Shown: positions 13,714 through 63,762, counted from the first letter of the stretch. The stretch: DNA of 64,000 nucleotides from Blastocystis sp. Blastoise (GCA_039096225.1 JBBPEB010000006.1:806001-870000), one strand, 5' to 3'. Program-made: numbers and translations. The notes: generated from the letters alone by a model not told the origin.

Positions 13714-16700
13714 TTATAATCCACAATAACGTAAAATACGAGTTAATATTTTTTTAGTTATTTCTTGAATATCATTATCATGAATAGTAATAATATCTAA
13801 TAAATAAATAGATATATAAGGTTCAATAGCTTTATTATTAGGAATAGCGATAATTGGAGGTAGAACACAAGCTATGGTATCATCTATTGTTATTTTTGGA
13901 ACAATATTAAAATAATATAATAATATATTCTTTATTGATGTTGTAAAAATATCATCTAAATATATATATATATAGTAAATAGAATATAAAAACTATATAT
14001 ATATATATATATATATATATATATACTATCTTGAGAATAATTATTTGAAATAGATTTAAATGTAGATATATATATAGTTAAAAACGATGGAAGACTAATT
14101 TTACATATCTATATATATAATTTATTAAATTATCTAAAAATAGATATATATACATCAATATATTTTGTATTAGTAATAAAATGAATATAATTATTCATAA
14201 TTTGTTTATACACTTTTTCTAAATATTCATTTGAAGTTTTCATCATCTCAACTAGATATATATATATTATATATTATATATTATAATATATTATATTTTA
14301 TATATTATATATTATATAAATATATACATAGCATGTCACTAGTTATCTGTTCAATTTTATTAAATAATAAATCCACACAATGATCATTAATAATAGAAGG
14401 ATGAATAGTATATATATATTTATCAATATATAATAATAAATGAATACAATTATTACAAGTTTCTTCATCACTATATATAGTGGTATTTATAACATTATTA
14501 ATAAAGATAATTATTAATAAGCATATTCTAATTATTAGAATATGTAAAATAAACACATTTATTATTATTAGTATACATATAAAAATAATCATATTTATAA
14601 CATTATTAATAAAGATAATTATTAATAAGCATATTCTAATTATTAGAATATGTAAAATAAACACATTTATTATTATTAGTATACATATAAAAATAATCAT
14701 ATTTATTATTATTCTACATATTTACTAATAATCATATTTATTATTATTATTATATATATTTACAAATAATCATATTTATTATATATATATATATACTCAA
14801 TAGTTTCAAAGGTAGATGTGATATTAGTTAATACATCATTCCAATTATCAATATTAATATTATTAAATATTCCTTGTTCTATTGTACCTATAGATTTTTC
14901 TATTTCTTTTTCTTCTTCTTTATTATCTATATCACTCTTAACAGATGTTACAGAAGTTGTTGATCTTGTAAGGTAACCAGTGGATTTCGGTTTAGAAATA
15001 ACACCAATTGTCTTTTTTGTAGCTTTCAAGTCACTTACAATCTATATATATATATAATACAAAATTCATTCTTTTCATAATTATTAATTATATATATATA
15101 TATATATACCTGTTGTATTTCTCGAATCATATTCTCTTCCTTCGTAATTGATAACATTTTTTCTGTTTCTTCAATATATATATCAATATATATATTTCCT
15201 TCTTCTTTCATATGTAAATACATATTAAATAGTAATATAATAATTTCTTTCTATATAATATTTATATTATTATATATATATAATTTATAAATAATCATTA
15301 CATACAGATATATTTGTAAGCTTTCCTTTACGTCTATTCACATTGAATTTCCCCTGGTTTTTTTCACCTATTTTTATATCATTGGATAATATTTGACAAA
15401 TAGAAAAGAATAATAATCGTAAATTCTCAGGGGAATCCGTATATTCTTGACTATAAATAATAAAATATTAATCGTATTATTCGTATTAGTGTTTTATGTA
15501 GAATATTGAGTAGATTTATATATATATATATACTATCCTTGGAATAAATAATTAAAAAGACGAATTATTGCTATATACACATCATCTACTTCTGAATTAT
15601 TTAATAAACTATATATATATATATATAAATTATATAAATATATATATATATATATATATATATACTTATTATTTCTTGATACTTCTAAAACATGTGTATA
15701 TAATATTTTATATAAAGCCAAACGATTCTCATCCATTATTTGAGGATTTATAAGATTCTATATATACATATATATTAATTTAAAATATAAGTTAATAATA
15801 TATATATATATATATATACATCATTTTCATCAACAAAAGTAAGTAAAGGGAATGATATTTCCTAAATATATATATATATTATTATTATTATTATTATTAT
15901 TATTAAGACTTTAATTAAATGTAAATATATATATATATACTTCAAGACAGTTAATAGCAGCTAAAGGAACTTCTTTTCCTTCTCTATATATACAGCTACA
16001 TACATAGTCACAAATATGTGTATATATATCAAATAATTGAGGGAGAAGAACTAACTTGGGTAATAATAACTTTAATATACGTGCTACCTATATATATATA
16101 GTTTATTATGATATATAAAAATTATTATTATATCTAAAAATAATGATAATATATAAAATATAGATTAATATATATAATCAATTATTTGTTTATAATATAT
16201 AATAAATAATACTATATATATAATTATTTCTTTTAGTACATAAAATATATATATACGCCTTTTAACTGAATAGCTCTAGTTTCATTCCATTGTTTTTCAC
16301 TTGTATTTCGACTGTGATGCTGAATAATCACGGGAGAAGAAGAACTTGGACCTAAAATTATATATAGTATATATTATATATATATATATTATATATGTAT
16401 ATACTTTTCTCTTCTTTTAAAGCAGTTGCTTCTATTTTCTCAATTAATACATTTATACATTCATCAAATAATTCTAAGTAATTTCCCGCGATTATATATC
16501 CATCTTGAGCACAAATCAGTTGGAAAACCGTGTGTAACGCGGCATTACGAATACCAGGTCTCTATATATTATTAAATTAATAATAACTGAATATAAAATT
16601 ATAAAATATAAAATATATAAAATATATAAAATATAAAATATATAATGTAAAATATATATAATATAAAATATATAAAATTTTTATAATATAAAATATATAA

Positions 16701-61046: not shown

Positions 61047-63762
61047 TTACAATGTGTTGTTCATAGTTTCCTATAAAAATTAAGTATATAAAACAATTCT
61101 TTAAAAAAAGTATTTTATTAATTTTAAAAACATACAGTAGGAGGGCATGCAGTTGGAGTGACGAGTATAGCGTTGTATACGCACGTAGATGGTTCTGAAA
61201 CAGAATGTAACGATACTTCTTCACCACATTCTAAAGTAACCTGAAAAGAATATATAATATAATATATATAAATAGATAAAGAATAATACTAAGATAAATA
61301 TATATACTAAGTATTAGATATATATATATACAATAATAGATCTTTCTGGTCCATTCCAACATCGTTCACCTCCAGTGAAACTCATTTGTTTATATATATG
61401 ATTTTGAGGATCTTGATTTCCTAAAGTAAACTTATTCCCAAGGGAATTGACAGATTAAGGATATATATATATAATTATATATAGAAAATAAAAGTATATA
61501 AGATAATAATTTGAATATATATAATTTATTTAAATATTATTATCATAAATAGTTTATAATACATAAAAGAATATATATATATATATATATATATATATAT
61601 ATATATAAGATATATATGATCTTGAGAAGCTTTATCAAAGGGACAGATAGAATATACATATTTATTAGCCTATATATAGAATATTAATGAAAACAATAGT
61701 ATTCAATAGATATATATATAATAATAACTATAATAATATATAATAATAATAATAACAATATTATACTTTAACTGAATAGCATTTTCCTCTCAGTATATCC
61801 ATTTCATAGAAATAACCGTGGGACTGATTCTTGTAATCTTCAATTGATTTTAATTCTTTTTCTTTTTCTTCTTTTTCGCGTGATAATTCATCAATTTGTG
61901 ATTGTATATCTTTTAATTCTTGATTATCTTCTATTTGTACATGACTAAACACATCTAAAGACTCAGGGGTAATCTCTGGACTATAGTCATTTATATATAT
62001 ATATATATATATATAATAAGAATAATAAATATATATAATAATAATAAATATATATATAAGAATAAAAATTAAATTAATAATAACACGTTTAAGACACGTC
62101 TATCATAATATATATATATATATATATATTAATAAATATAATTCTACATATAATATATAACTATATATATACATATCAGTTTCAATTCCTTTTTCTTTGT
62201 TTATTTTCATAATTTCTTGTTTTATATGTTCATAAACTTCTTTTTCATCTATTTTCTTATGCATATCAATAAGTACTGATATAAATAAAGAATGCAATTC
62301 AGACTCTTTCAGATCATTTAAGCCATATGTAGCACTAAATGAATCATAATCTTCAGAACTTGACTCCTATTATATATATATATATATATATATATATATA
62401 TATATATATATATATATATATATATATATATATATATATATATATATATATATATATATATATATATATATATATATATATTATTAACTAAATTATTATT
62501 ATTATATATTCCATATATTTAAAATATATATATATATATAATTCATCAAATAATATTTACATATATTTACGCTATTCTTAGAGATTTCTTGTTTTTTAAT
62601 TTCATATTCTTCAGAAAGAGATCGTTTCTTATCTTCAAGTGACTCAATTTCTGTGGGAATTAACTCATACTATAACAGAAATAATAATATTTATATATAT
62701 ATAAATAAAACATAGAATTATAATTATTAATACATTATATATAAGAAAAACATAGAATTATAATTATTAATACATTATATATAATAATAAATATACACGT
62801 GCAACTTTTGTTTTATAAGTCTCTTTGCCTTGCTTACTCCATTGTTCTAATAGAACTTGACCTTTTTGGGTACGTTGAGTCTCTTCAGCGTGATCTGCTC
62901 TATATAGAATAATATTAAGTATATATATATATATATTATATTATATATATACATAATTAGTAAAGTATAATATATATATTAAGTAATAACATATACTTAT
63001 TAAGTAAATAATATATATATAATAAAAACCATTAAATATTATATATATATAAAATAAATACTAATTTTTTAAAAATTATGAAATAAATATATTTATATAC
63101 GAATAAGGCATATATAGAGAAGAATAAAGTTACTAATAAATATATAAATATATACTCCCAAATTGTATGCATTTGTTTACATGTATTTTCACATTTTATC
63201 GAAGAGTCATATTCATCAGAACCATCACAACAATCTATATATATAATACATATAATATATATATATATTATATATAATTATAAAACATAATAAAAATATG
63301 AAATACTTACCACAAATACCATCATTGACCCTAGAAGAAGGAATATATTCACCTATGTGATCATTATTTTGACAGTAAAATTTCATGTTTGAACAAGCAG
63401 CTATTAAAAATAATTATCATAATATATATATAGAATAAAATCATTTAAAATATATATAAAATTTGTGTCATACAAGTTCCAGGTTCATCGCTGCCATCTA
63501 AGCAGTCGCAATAATTATCATTGACATATAATGTAGAAATTCTTTTCGGTTGACCTAATGCGGAATCGCAAACAAATTCCTATCTGATAAGGAAATATTT
63601 AAAATGTATATAAATACAGCTTGTAAATATTTGTTTAAATCATTTTTTTCAACTCCATAAGTAGGAGTAATAGTTAAACTTAGAATTAATGGTACAAAGA
63701 ATAGAAATGAAAGAAAAAACTATATAACTAGAACAATTTTGAATAATTTAAAATACTTTCAT
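61047..63762 (-). CDS. PRKCSH: Glucosidase II beta subunit (PRKCSH/GTB1-like), multi-exon
   Basis: Signal peptide [55 protein letters not shown], coiled coil, and MRH domain ([24 protein letters not shown]...SEPSTCVY). Confidence 0.92.
62372..62480. repeat. Long (TA)n microsatellite next to an intron acceptor in PRKCSH
   Basis: About 110 nt of uninterrupted TA. Confidence 0.95.

Follow-up and report, generated by a model that had tools for sequence, protein, structure and literature searches.

Palindromic words iterated through coding sequence are known from bacteria, and we know of none from eukaryotic genes. HIP1, the highly iterated palindrome GCGATCGC of cyanobacteria, is present in thousands of copies, mainly in coding sequence and in all frames, and its function is debated. 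The uptake sequences of Haemophilus (USS) and Neisseria (DUS) occur at about one copy per few kb, are genic and peptide-shaping, are rarer in recently acquired DNA, and are spread by drive. Among the binding sites of eukaryotic proteins, the EBF/COE consensus ATTCCCNNGGGAAT is read by a homodimer; to our knowledge, COE is known only from animals and EBF sites do not recur through exons. The consensus words of E2F and CSL are TTTSSCGC and YGTGRGAA, respectively, and TTCCCGC is an E2F-type half. Here we analyse a 64,000-nucleotide stretch of Blastocystis sp. (the window), in which a 14-bp palindrome recurs through exons. A literature search for this word gave no relevant report.

Results

The initial annotation of the window had quoted 21 occurrences of a CpG-centred word, and all of them are present where it placed them. 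A loose regular expression recovers 23 sites, which all fall within 16329-61816 of the window, and the window contains seven copies each of CCACGGGA and CCCGCGG, against 0.21 and 0.30 expected under a third-order Markov model. Site anatomy was based on 264 kb (the window plus the next 200 kb) together with pattern counts over the 33.3-Mb genome, for which the same pattern read backwards served as a control. Genome-wide, TTCCCNNGGGAA was found 558 times (reversed control, 1), TWMCCRYGGKWA 1379 times (control, 33), and the perfect ATTCCCGCGGGAAT 56 times (control, 0). ATTCCCG-CGGGAAT (the hyphen marks the dyad axis here and below) and its close variants amount to more than 1000 copies in exons of this very AT-rich genome, and the top non-AT 6-mer in 264 kb is CCGCGG, with 60 strand-hits versus 9. 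A codon-shuffled null in which the encoded amino acids and the local composition are kept, the check proposed in the initial annotation, was run on the 264 kb and bore out the claimed recurrence: CCGCGG was counted 18 times versus 0.8, CRCGGG/CCCGYG 47 times versus 5.1, and position weight matrix (PWM) scores of at least 16 were reached 41 times versus 2.9, with no match to the reversed PWM at the same threshold. The one-off neighbours CAGCGG and CTGCGG were found 0 times versus 9.5 under the shuffle; this apparent depletion probably arose because the shuffle redistributed motif codons, and it is not counted as evidence.

According to the PWM of the sites in 264 kb, the motif is the palindrome ATWMCCR-YGGKWAT with the half-site consensus ATTCCCG, in which T at position -6 reaches 88%, C at position -2 reaches 99%, and the centre is R-Y. 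The half-site varies among TTCCC, TAACC, TCCCC and TAATC, each half varies separately from the other, and the half-site classes pair at the frequencies predicted by independence. Among strict TTCCCNNGGGAA sites, the central two nucleotides are GC in 16%, AC/GT in 52%, AT in 14%, and AA/TT in 16%, so that R-Y centres (GC, AC/GT or AT) make up 82%, while TA or CG centres are absent from the first 50 such sites. About 30% of the strict sites contain no CpG at all, and in each half a flexible pyrimidine-purine step, CG or CA, adjoins the centre. Helical phasing between neighbouring sites was looked for and was not seen.

When flanks were compared between sites, similarity ended within 16 bp, and because it is confined to this length the copies are not a mobile element; a mobile-element or insertion footprint was ruled out by the dissimilar flanks together with the lack of an insertion relative to homologues. 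CpG decay from a GC-centred ancestor was also rejected: of the variants of the phase xxC CGC GGx, CAC, which is non-synonymous, was found ten times and CGT, which is synonymous, not once, indicating that the centre is set by protein tolerance rather than by decay.

In order along the window, TTTCCCG-CGATTAT (16482-16495, PWM score 17.1) lies in a short exon of a minus-strand gene, ATTCCCG-TCGGAAT (16831-16844, 18.4) in an exon of ~86 nt, and ATTTCCG-CGGGGGA (17174-17187, 18.2) in an exon of ~101 nt with the peptide SPAEI, followed by ATTCCCG-TGAATAT (17398-17411, 15.3). The highest score in 264 kb, 26.5, belongs to ATTCCCG-CGGGGAT (18244-18257), with the peptide IPAG in an exon of ~87 nt. ATAATCA-CGGGAAT (21042-21055, 16.9) combines a strong and a weak half; ATTCCCA-CGGGGGA (23959-23972, 18.4) has the peptide IPTG and precedes TTTCCCG-TGGAAAT (26471-26484, 17.2). 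TTTCCCG-TGGTTAT (29858-29871, 18.2), just beyond a Tc1 transposase ORF, is ambiguous between coding and noncoding. A gene for an ACSBG-type acyl-CoA synthetase carries CCTCCCG-CGGTTAT (31053-31066, 17.1), which writes the invariant IITAGGEN via ATA ACC GCG GGA, and the perfect palindrome ATAACCG-CGGTTAT (31142-31155, 20.1), with the peptide DNRGY. In an alignment of 20 homologues, this is the only one with the Arg of DNRGY, the 19 others being without Arg; a homologue search with the acyl-CoA synthetase exon gave none above 64% identity. Further on are ATCCCCA-CGGGAAT (32248-32261, 23.8; FPWG), TTCCCCG-CGGTTAT (40414-40427, 22.8; DNRGE), and ATTCCCA-CGGGAGG (43561-43574, 18.4). One 567-aa exon holds both ATTCCCA-CGGGAAA (51565-51578, 21.5; IPTGN) and ATAACCA-CGGGAAT (52121-52134, 20.0; NNHGN), and further sites are AGTCCCG-TGGGAAT (55399-55412, 20.4; SPVGI), GTCCCCG-CGGGAAT (58449-58462, 23.8; VPAGI), and ATAACCG-TGGGACT (61812-61825, 17.6). 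The 12-kb single-exon Asn-rich ORF (892-12897, minus strand) is a negative region: as had been remarked from inspection, the regular expression finds no site in it, and it contains just two motif-compatible peptides, both unrealised. An Rfam search of the window gave no match.

Sites occupy 0.55% of codons, yet they hold 22% of GCG, 29% of CGC, 33% of GGG, and 17% of CCC, in agreement with the earlier proposal that the motif forces rare codons in exons. Motif-compatible peptides number 61, compared with 27 when the amino acids of the proteins are shuffled and 18 when the proteins are reversed, and because they are doubled (61 versus 27), the choice of amino acids is bent as well. Such opportunities are realised as sites in 59% of cases, and in 84% at top scores. 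In LeuRS and in the acyl-CoA synthetase, the word lies on native residues with no insertion. A word superimposed at the DNA level on coding sequence, counter to codon usage and AT bias, as the initial annotation had it, is thus what we observe. An MFS exon has a single distant homologue, 49% identical, on a metagenome contig of 46% GC.

The motif can be read as the recognition word for a putative symmetric, probably homodimeric DNA-binding protein, whose copies would be kept by weak selection for an intragenic function. We prefer this reading tentatively, with a confidence somewhat short of even. For the maintenance of the word, selection and sequence-specific drive are equally live explanations, which our data cannot separate. 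In a non-adaptive molecular drive, a sequence-specific repair or recombination step would favour the word, which would be over-transmitted and would build up at positions that proteins can accommodate, individual sites having no function; for example, a bound protein might shield its allele from breaks while unbound alleles are converted, or mismatch correction might be context-biased. The word would then correspond, in a eukaryote, to the uptake sequences, HIP1 or VSP-repair words of bacteria. We regard drive of this kind as possible but doubtful. The signature of thousands of copies, in every frame and both orientations and with amino acids bent, is like that of USS, DUS and HIP1. Helitron ORFs contain a sole weak match of chance level (score 15.4), and Tc1 and MULE coding sequences contain weak sites at most in a small sample. 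Site density differs ~5-fold between neighbouring domains of tens of kb and correlates weakly with GC3 (rho 0.50, p 0.02), and non-motif GC within 40 nt of sites is slightly higher (0.31 versus 0.29). On the other hand, a strong local GC peak around sites was looked for and is absent, and two pyruvate:ferredoxin oxidoreductase (PFO) genes and the [FeFe] hydrogenase gene, presumably old, carry no sites. Under drive, sites would also be expected to accumulate in non-coding DNA that is free of constraint; this DNA is almost empty of them, although rapid (TA)n turnover could erase copies there. Moreover, we know of no eukaryotic mechanism for a word-specific conversion bias.

The occurrence of the motif in noncoding DNA, as originally described, holds for no more than a small number of sites, which are weak or ambiguous. 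The non-coding part of the genome consists almost entirely of (TA)n. The scarcity of sites in it is not obviously explained by selection on function, and the domain-scale variation in density with its GC3 correlation is also compatible with recombination-linked drive. Within genes, sites are clustered in parts and are not biased toward the 5' end; those of the LeuRS gene lie centrally and toward the 3' end. This distribution is not that of a classical promoter element.

The distribution among exons bears on another explanation, an intragenic roadblock or exon mark, in which a bound protein would slow RNA polymerase II or position nucleosomes and thereby aid the recognition of short exons between GT(AT)nAG introns. 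Exon inclusion promoted by CTCF is a precedent for such marking, and the introns of this genome consist almost wholly of (TA)n and offer few conventional signals. Site density is 0.5/kb in blocks of 100-800 nt, 0.13/kb in blocks of 800-1600 nt, and 0.05/kb in blocks of more than 1600 nt, so that long blocks without interruption are 4-10 times poorer in sites; single-exon ORFs are without sites, and the outer ~40 nt of blocks are avoided. Nevertheless, fewer than 10% of exon-sized blocks are occupied (78 sites over 1063 blocks), sites in short exons are widely spread and keep no constant distance from splice sites, and the shortest exons are not denser. The long site-free blocks are mostly transposons or special genes, so that exon length is confounded with gene class. 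An exon mark is an unlikely explanation.

Sites occupy all three codon phases, and the strong half lies upstream in 23 and downstream in 23 sites relative to the coding strand, which agrees with the earlier description of a motif in different frames and both orientations. These properties bear on whether the word acts in RNA, as a hairpin, an RNA-binding-protein site or a rare-codon pause in mRNA. The near restriction of sites to exons and the use of rare codons would suit such a signal, but the balanced orientation would not, and a pause signal is not expected as a palindrome in three frames. The arms do not covary: positions ±4 are complementary in 28 of 78 sites and positions ±5 in 22 of 78. 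On the coding strand, CCACGG (13) exceeds CCGTGG (4), the opposite of what G-U tolerance predicts. Spliced genes were searched exon by exon, with no joined gene model, and no copy was found across predicted exon-exon junctions, against ~4.5 expected if mature mRNA carried the signal; the idea that introns split the word was rejected on the same ground. Together, the frames, the orientation, and the lack of covariation and of junction copies point to a word that acts at the level of double-stranded DNA, and an RNA-level signal is highly improbable.

That a sequence-specific factor reads the site, as the initial annotation suggested, is supported by the dyad and the independent half-sites, whereas the resemblances that it noted (E2F, CSL) and the methylation site that it suggested found no support; it also listed a chromatin barrier and a replication origin as candidate roles. 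An E2F/DP double site would consist of two overlapping inverted TTTCCCGC sites of cell-cycle E2F factors, and E2F_TDP domains are indeed encoded at about 5-7 genomic places (7 matches, best E 1.7e-12). However, the GC centre that gives the CGC core is present in just ~16% of strict TTCCCNNGGGAA sites, leaving ~84% without it; GCGC-containing words are at the null (14 versus 16.2), where an E2F site would use the sister variants TTTGGCGC and TTTCGCGC equally, and TAACC and TAATC half-sites do not fit. Furthermore, more than 1000 exonic sites in mid-gene clusters are unlike promoter-proximal sites at a limited set of cell-cycle genes, so there is very little to recommend an E2F identity. As for CSL, whose YGTGRGAA core is asymmetric, CGTGGGAA is present only in A-type sites and the palindrome is left unexplained. 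Genome domain searches for COE (PF16422), CSL (PF09271), CG-1 and Zn2Cys6 gave no match; the search controls were silent too, making these weak negatives. Least probable of all is a target of a sequence-specific cytosine methyltransferase (CCGCGG-type), the word being maintained by repair bias or a methyl reader: the most enriched single 6-mer is a CCGCGG core with two CpGs, but the sole C5 methyltransferase (PF00145) match in the genome is Dnmt2-like (PPCQ, ENV and C-terminal tRNA-methylase-type motifs), CpG observed/expected is 0.81 with no strong depletion, the CpG-free strict sites would escape it, and variable half-sites are unlike restriction-modification specificity.

Discussion

The excess of the word, its dyad anatomy, its DNA-level character and its bending of protein sequences are observed; from these we infer a protein dimer that would read the word and weak selection that would keep its copies. 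Under this preferred reading, copies would arise by point substitutions that approach the word both through synonymous codon changes and at amino-acid positions that tolerate replacement, a symmetric, probably homodimeric protein would bind the two half-sites around the dyad, and weak selection would retain exonic copies in ordinary multi-exon host genes. Their function might be to mark the bodies of host genes, amid (TA)n non-coding DNA, at the level of chromatin or of transcription elongation.

If a protein reads the word, a large share of genes carry a second, DNA-level message that overrides codon usage and changes amino acids, including one adjoining a conserved enzyme motif, and overlapping codes and exonic binding sites could be studied where the signal stands out against 80% A+T. 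If drive is the cause, the word would be the first known eukaryotic analogue of uptake sequences or HIP1 and represent a new kind of biased gene conversion. Either way, the rare CCC, GCG, CGC and GGG codons here are non-random, which concerns annotators, and the motif confounds codon-based inferences of expression or transfer in this genome. More speculatively, the word may be a eukaryotic counterpart of bacterial iterated words, either propagating itself through exons by biased gene conversion or break protection, or serving as a gene-body 'self' code, read by a dimer that would tag host genes but not transposons or newly arrived DNA.

Compared with known systems, E2F and CSL consensus words overlap single half-sites and leave the dyad, the half-site variants, the centre spectrum and the exonic distribution unexplained. 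EBF/COE provides a nearly identical dyad of 14 bp, in which two bases separate the TCCC and GGGA halves, and the PWM and the TTCCCNNGGGAA counts show that the word conforms to the ATTCCCNNGGGAAT palindrome; EBF/COE has a free NN centre, whereas the word here is biased to R-Y and accepts TAACC and TAATC halves. USS and DUS resemble it in a density of about one copy per few kb and in largely genic copies that shape encoded peptides, but they are asymmetric and depend on natural transformation, whereas the word is symmetric; because we know of no uptake route of this type in eukaryotes, another drive, such as biased gene conversion, would be needed here. HIP1 differs in that the present word is longer (14 bp) and degenerate, consists of two independent half-sites, and lies in a eukaryotic nuclear genome with introns, in which no matching DNA methyltransferase was found. 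Like HIP1, it is a short GC-rich palindrome iterated mostly within coding sequence, far above codon-based expectation, and it shares with the HIP1/USS type the large excess, the genic location, the use of all frames and both orientations, and the shaping of peptides.

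Results

The initial annotation had proposed that a CpG-centred motif is dispersed through exons as a DNA-level code. Direct inspection found the quoted word at every coordinate where it had been placed, and a loose regular expression returned 23 sites in the window, all within 16329-61816; as claimed, none lay in the single-exon, Asn-rich 12-kb ORF (892..12897, minus strand). Under a third-order Markov model, CCACGGGA and CCCGCGG were each observed seven times in the window, versus 0.21 and 0.30 expected, respectively. In the 264 kb comprising the window and the next 200 kb of the same contig, CCGCGG was the top-enriched non-AT hexamer, and 56% of CGCG tetramers had a preceding C and a following G. 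Comparison with codon-shuffled sequence had also been proposed. When codons were shuffled without altering any protein or the local pool of codons, CCGCGG (18 observed versus 0.8) and CRCGGG/CCCGYG (47 versus 5.1) were in excess. GCGC, CCCGGG and CCATGG matched this null, and CCGG was depleted (15 versus 28.8 in the 264 kb). CACGTG was likewise over-represented in exons of the 264 kb (20 versus 6.1). Genome-wide, with the identical pattern read backwards as control, TTCCCRCGGGAA occurred 250 times forward and 245 times reverse (backwards 0), TTCCCNNGGGAA, which defines strict sites, 558 times (backwards 1), TWMCCRYGGKWA 1379 times (backwards 33) and the perfect ATTCCCGCGGGAAT 56 times (backwards 0), across most contigs.

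Iterative refinement of a symmetrised matrix, derived from the 264 kb of a single contig, gave the 14-bp consensus ATWMCCR·YGGKWAT (the dot marks the dyad centre). The half-site consists of A (74%) at position -7, T (88%) at -6, T (52%) or A (34%) at -5, C (58%) or A (30%) at -4, C (81%) or T (19%) at -3, C (99%) at -2, and G (64%) or A (34%) at -1. Past ±8 the composition was that of the background, indicating that there is no longer repeated unit. Sixty sites in the 264 kb scored at least 16; inside predicted exon segments, which are crude calls made in this analysis, there were 41 versus 2.9 in the codon-shuffled null and 0 with the reversed matrix, counts that are biased in favour of a matrix trained on the same data, a bias of which the word counts are free. 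The half-sites were TTCCC (61), TAACC (22), TCCCC (21), TAATC (13) and rarer forms, and their pairing matched independence; the arms were complementary at ±4 in 28 of 78 sites and at ±5 in 22 of 78. This independent pairing and poor complementarity indicate that the dyad represents two halves read separately, not a stem. The centre of the first 50 strict sites was GC in 8, AC/GT in 26, AT in 7, AA/TT in 8, CA/TG in 1, and TA or CG in none. What stays constant is a CG or CA (pyrimidine-purine) step on both sides of the centre.

Almost all sites lay within long stop-free frames. All three reading phases were in use, in agreement with the different reading frames of the initial annotation, and the typical peptides group by phase into IPAG/IPTG/ITAG, NRG/SRG/NHG/SRDY and PRG/PWG. 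The reported use of rare codons was confirmed: the sites make up 0.55% of codons yet hold 22% of GCG, 29% of CGC, 33% of GGG and 17% of CCC. In the phase xxC CGC GGx, the middle codon was CGC (Arg) in 10 cases and CAC (His) in 10, and the site centre tracks the protein. Decay from a GC-centred ancestor was rejected, since CGT, the synonymous decay product, occurred 0 times in this phase. Motif-compatible places were defined as protein segments able to carry the word through synonymous choice alone (maximum score of at least 20). The word was realised in 36 of 61 such places (59%), and in 16 of 19 at a score of at least 22. Amino-acid-shuffled proteins contained 27 ± 5 places and reversed proteins 18, an excess in the real proteins indicating that amino acids too have shifted toward the word. 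In an exon for an ACSBG-type acyl-CoA synthetase, the invariant IITAGGEN uses ATA ACC GCG GGA, and DNRGY is written GAT AAC CGC GGT TAT, with Arg there in 0 of 19 aligned homologues. In an exon of the class I (Leu-type) tRNA synthetase gene (LeuRS), the words sit on native residues (KNRGN, PIPMVI, EIPMGK), with no insertions. Together, the data show that copies entered exons via point changes, both synonymous and, where the protein tolerates them, non-synonymous.

Read along the coding strand, the stronger half came first in 23 sites and second in 23. When 1192 candidate GT..AG junctions were joined, a single window reached the threshold, and this was an intact site that had been taken for a donor; re-paired control junctions gave 0.7. 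The test has modest power, with an estimated 4.5 or so junction-spanning copies expected if the word resided in mature mRNA. On the coding strand, CCACGG (13) exceeded CCGTGG (4), contrary to the pattern expected from G-U tolerance. These data place the word at the DNA level and disfavour an RNA-level signal.

The window covers 806001-870000 of contig C14. The genome (33.3 Mb, 34 contigs) has a G+C content of 21%, and its introns are nearly nothing but GT(AT)nAG, whereby genes are split into many short exons. At window 17235-17370 and in many other introns, GT(AT)nAG stood almost alone, with no branch site or polypyrimidine tract visible; 16588-16796 is an intron-like AT repeat. In blocks between AT tracts, site density dropped from about 0.5 per kb in those of 100-800 nt to 0.13 per kb in those of 800-1600 nt and 0.05 per kb in those longer than 1600 nt. 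Sites avoided block edges by about 40 nt, and no fixed spacing to splice sites was seen. Counts per 4 kb were over-dispersed (mean 1.18, variance 2.8), with about 8 sites within 1.6 kb of LeuRS and 12 within 3.3 kb at L012:5978-9273, a piece of the following 200 kb. The LeuRS sites occupy the central and 3' portions of the gene and are therefore not promoter-proximal. Besides the 12-kb ORF, about 9 kb of pyruvate:ferredoxin oxidoreductase (PFO) and hydrogenase coding sequence and the Helitron-rich final 40 kb had zero sites; just three motif-compatible peptides are encoded in the PFO genes, and the word is realised in 0 of 3. Patchiness was also genome-wide, with 18 strict sites in 198-264 kb of contig C2 and none in the following 94 kb. 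Site density correlated weakly with GC3 (rho 0.50, p 0.02, 21 bins), for which transposon-rich bins were partly responsible, and G+C outside the motif rose only slightly within 40 nt of sites (0.31 versus 0.29). The claim that the motif also occurs in noncoding DNA held in small part: 22 sites fell outside the crude exon calls, most of them still in exon-like sequence, and a few, close to the ends of a MULE and a Tc1 and to a repeat array, are perhaps non-coding.

Two PFOs, an [FeFe] hydrogenase, LeuRS, a PP2C phosphatase and Helitrons are encoded nearby, and the best-matching public datasets include a poly-A gut metatranscriptome; PFO, the hydrogenase and this match indicate an anaerobic, gut-associated eukaryote. 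The PFO genes are paired head to head (L006:9908 to L007:9568; 123908-133568 of the 264 kb), in a region with long exons and a G+C content of 36% that lacks motif sites. About 400 bp beyond the second PFO gene, and on its strand, comes an [FeFe] hydrogenase large-subunit exon; the two could be a fusion or a tight gene pair. Adjoining the first PFO gene, a 3.8-kb stretch (L006:5841-9627; 119841-123627) contains 19 copies of an unrelated word, AAGTTGCGACAA, several runs having 10-12 bp spacing. The word is found nowhere else in the 264 kb, and the array could serve as a promoter array or represent a mobile-element repeat. Two large Helitron ORFs (Helitron_like_N and PIF1 helicase; L020:2056-6624 and 233707-238560 of the 264 kb) adjoin duplicated Asn-rich ORFs (L002:5337-6182 and L020:892-1785), and GC3 in these regions was about 0.10, the sample minimum. 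The sole homologue of the MFS transporter of the window (49% identity) is on an ENA metagenome scaffold (L026, 1629 bp) with 46% G+C and C-ending codons, from a distant relative of very different composition.

Discussion

The analysis shows a symmetric, bipartite, DNA-level word whose distribution is patchy across genes and domains. Most simply, its reader would be a homodimeric DNA-binding protein. Tentatively, weak selection for a role inside genes may maintain the copies; polymerase or chromatin marking would be one sub-case. Maintenance by a word-specific drive, like uptake sequences or HIP1, is a somewhat less probable alternative: patchiness at the domain scale, the link to GC3 and the lack of sites in mobile DNA speak mildly for it, and the near-absence of sites from free non-coding DNA mildly against. 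A methylation site, also suggested initially, is unsupported, because the sole C5 methyltransferase match in the genome is a Dnmt2-like gene (L021:1501-3371, contig C34 from 406469 onward; PPCQ, ENV and C-terminal tRNA-methylase-type motifs, interrupted by introns), CpG observed/expected is 0.81 in the window, and about 30% of strict sites lack CpG. The E2F reading fails on centre spectrum, sister words and location, despite E2F_TDP domains encoded in the genome. Zn2Cys6, COE, CSL and CG-1 domains were not found, weak negatives given that search controls were silent too and short exons cut sensitivity.

Among known systems, HIP1 serves as an analogy only. By sequence alone, the nearest known word is the EBF/COE palindrome, ATTCCCNNGGGAAT, and the likeness is one of resemblance only.
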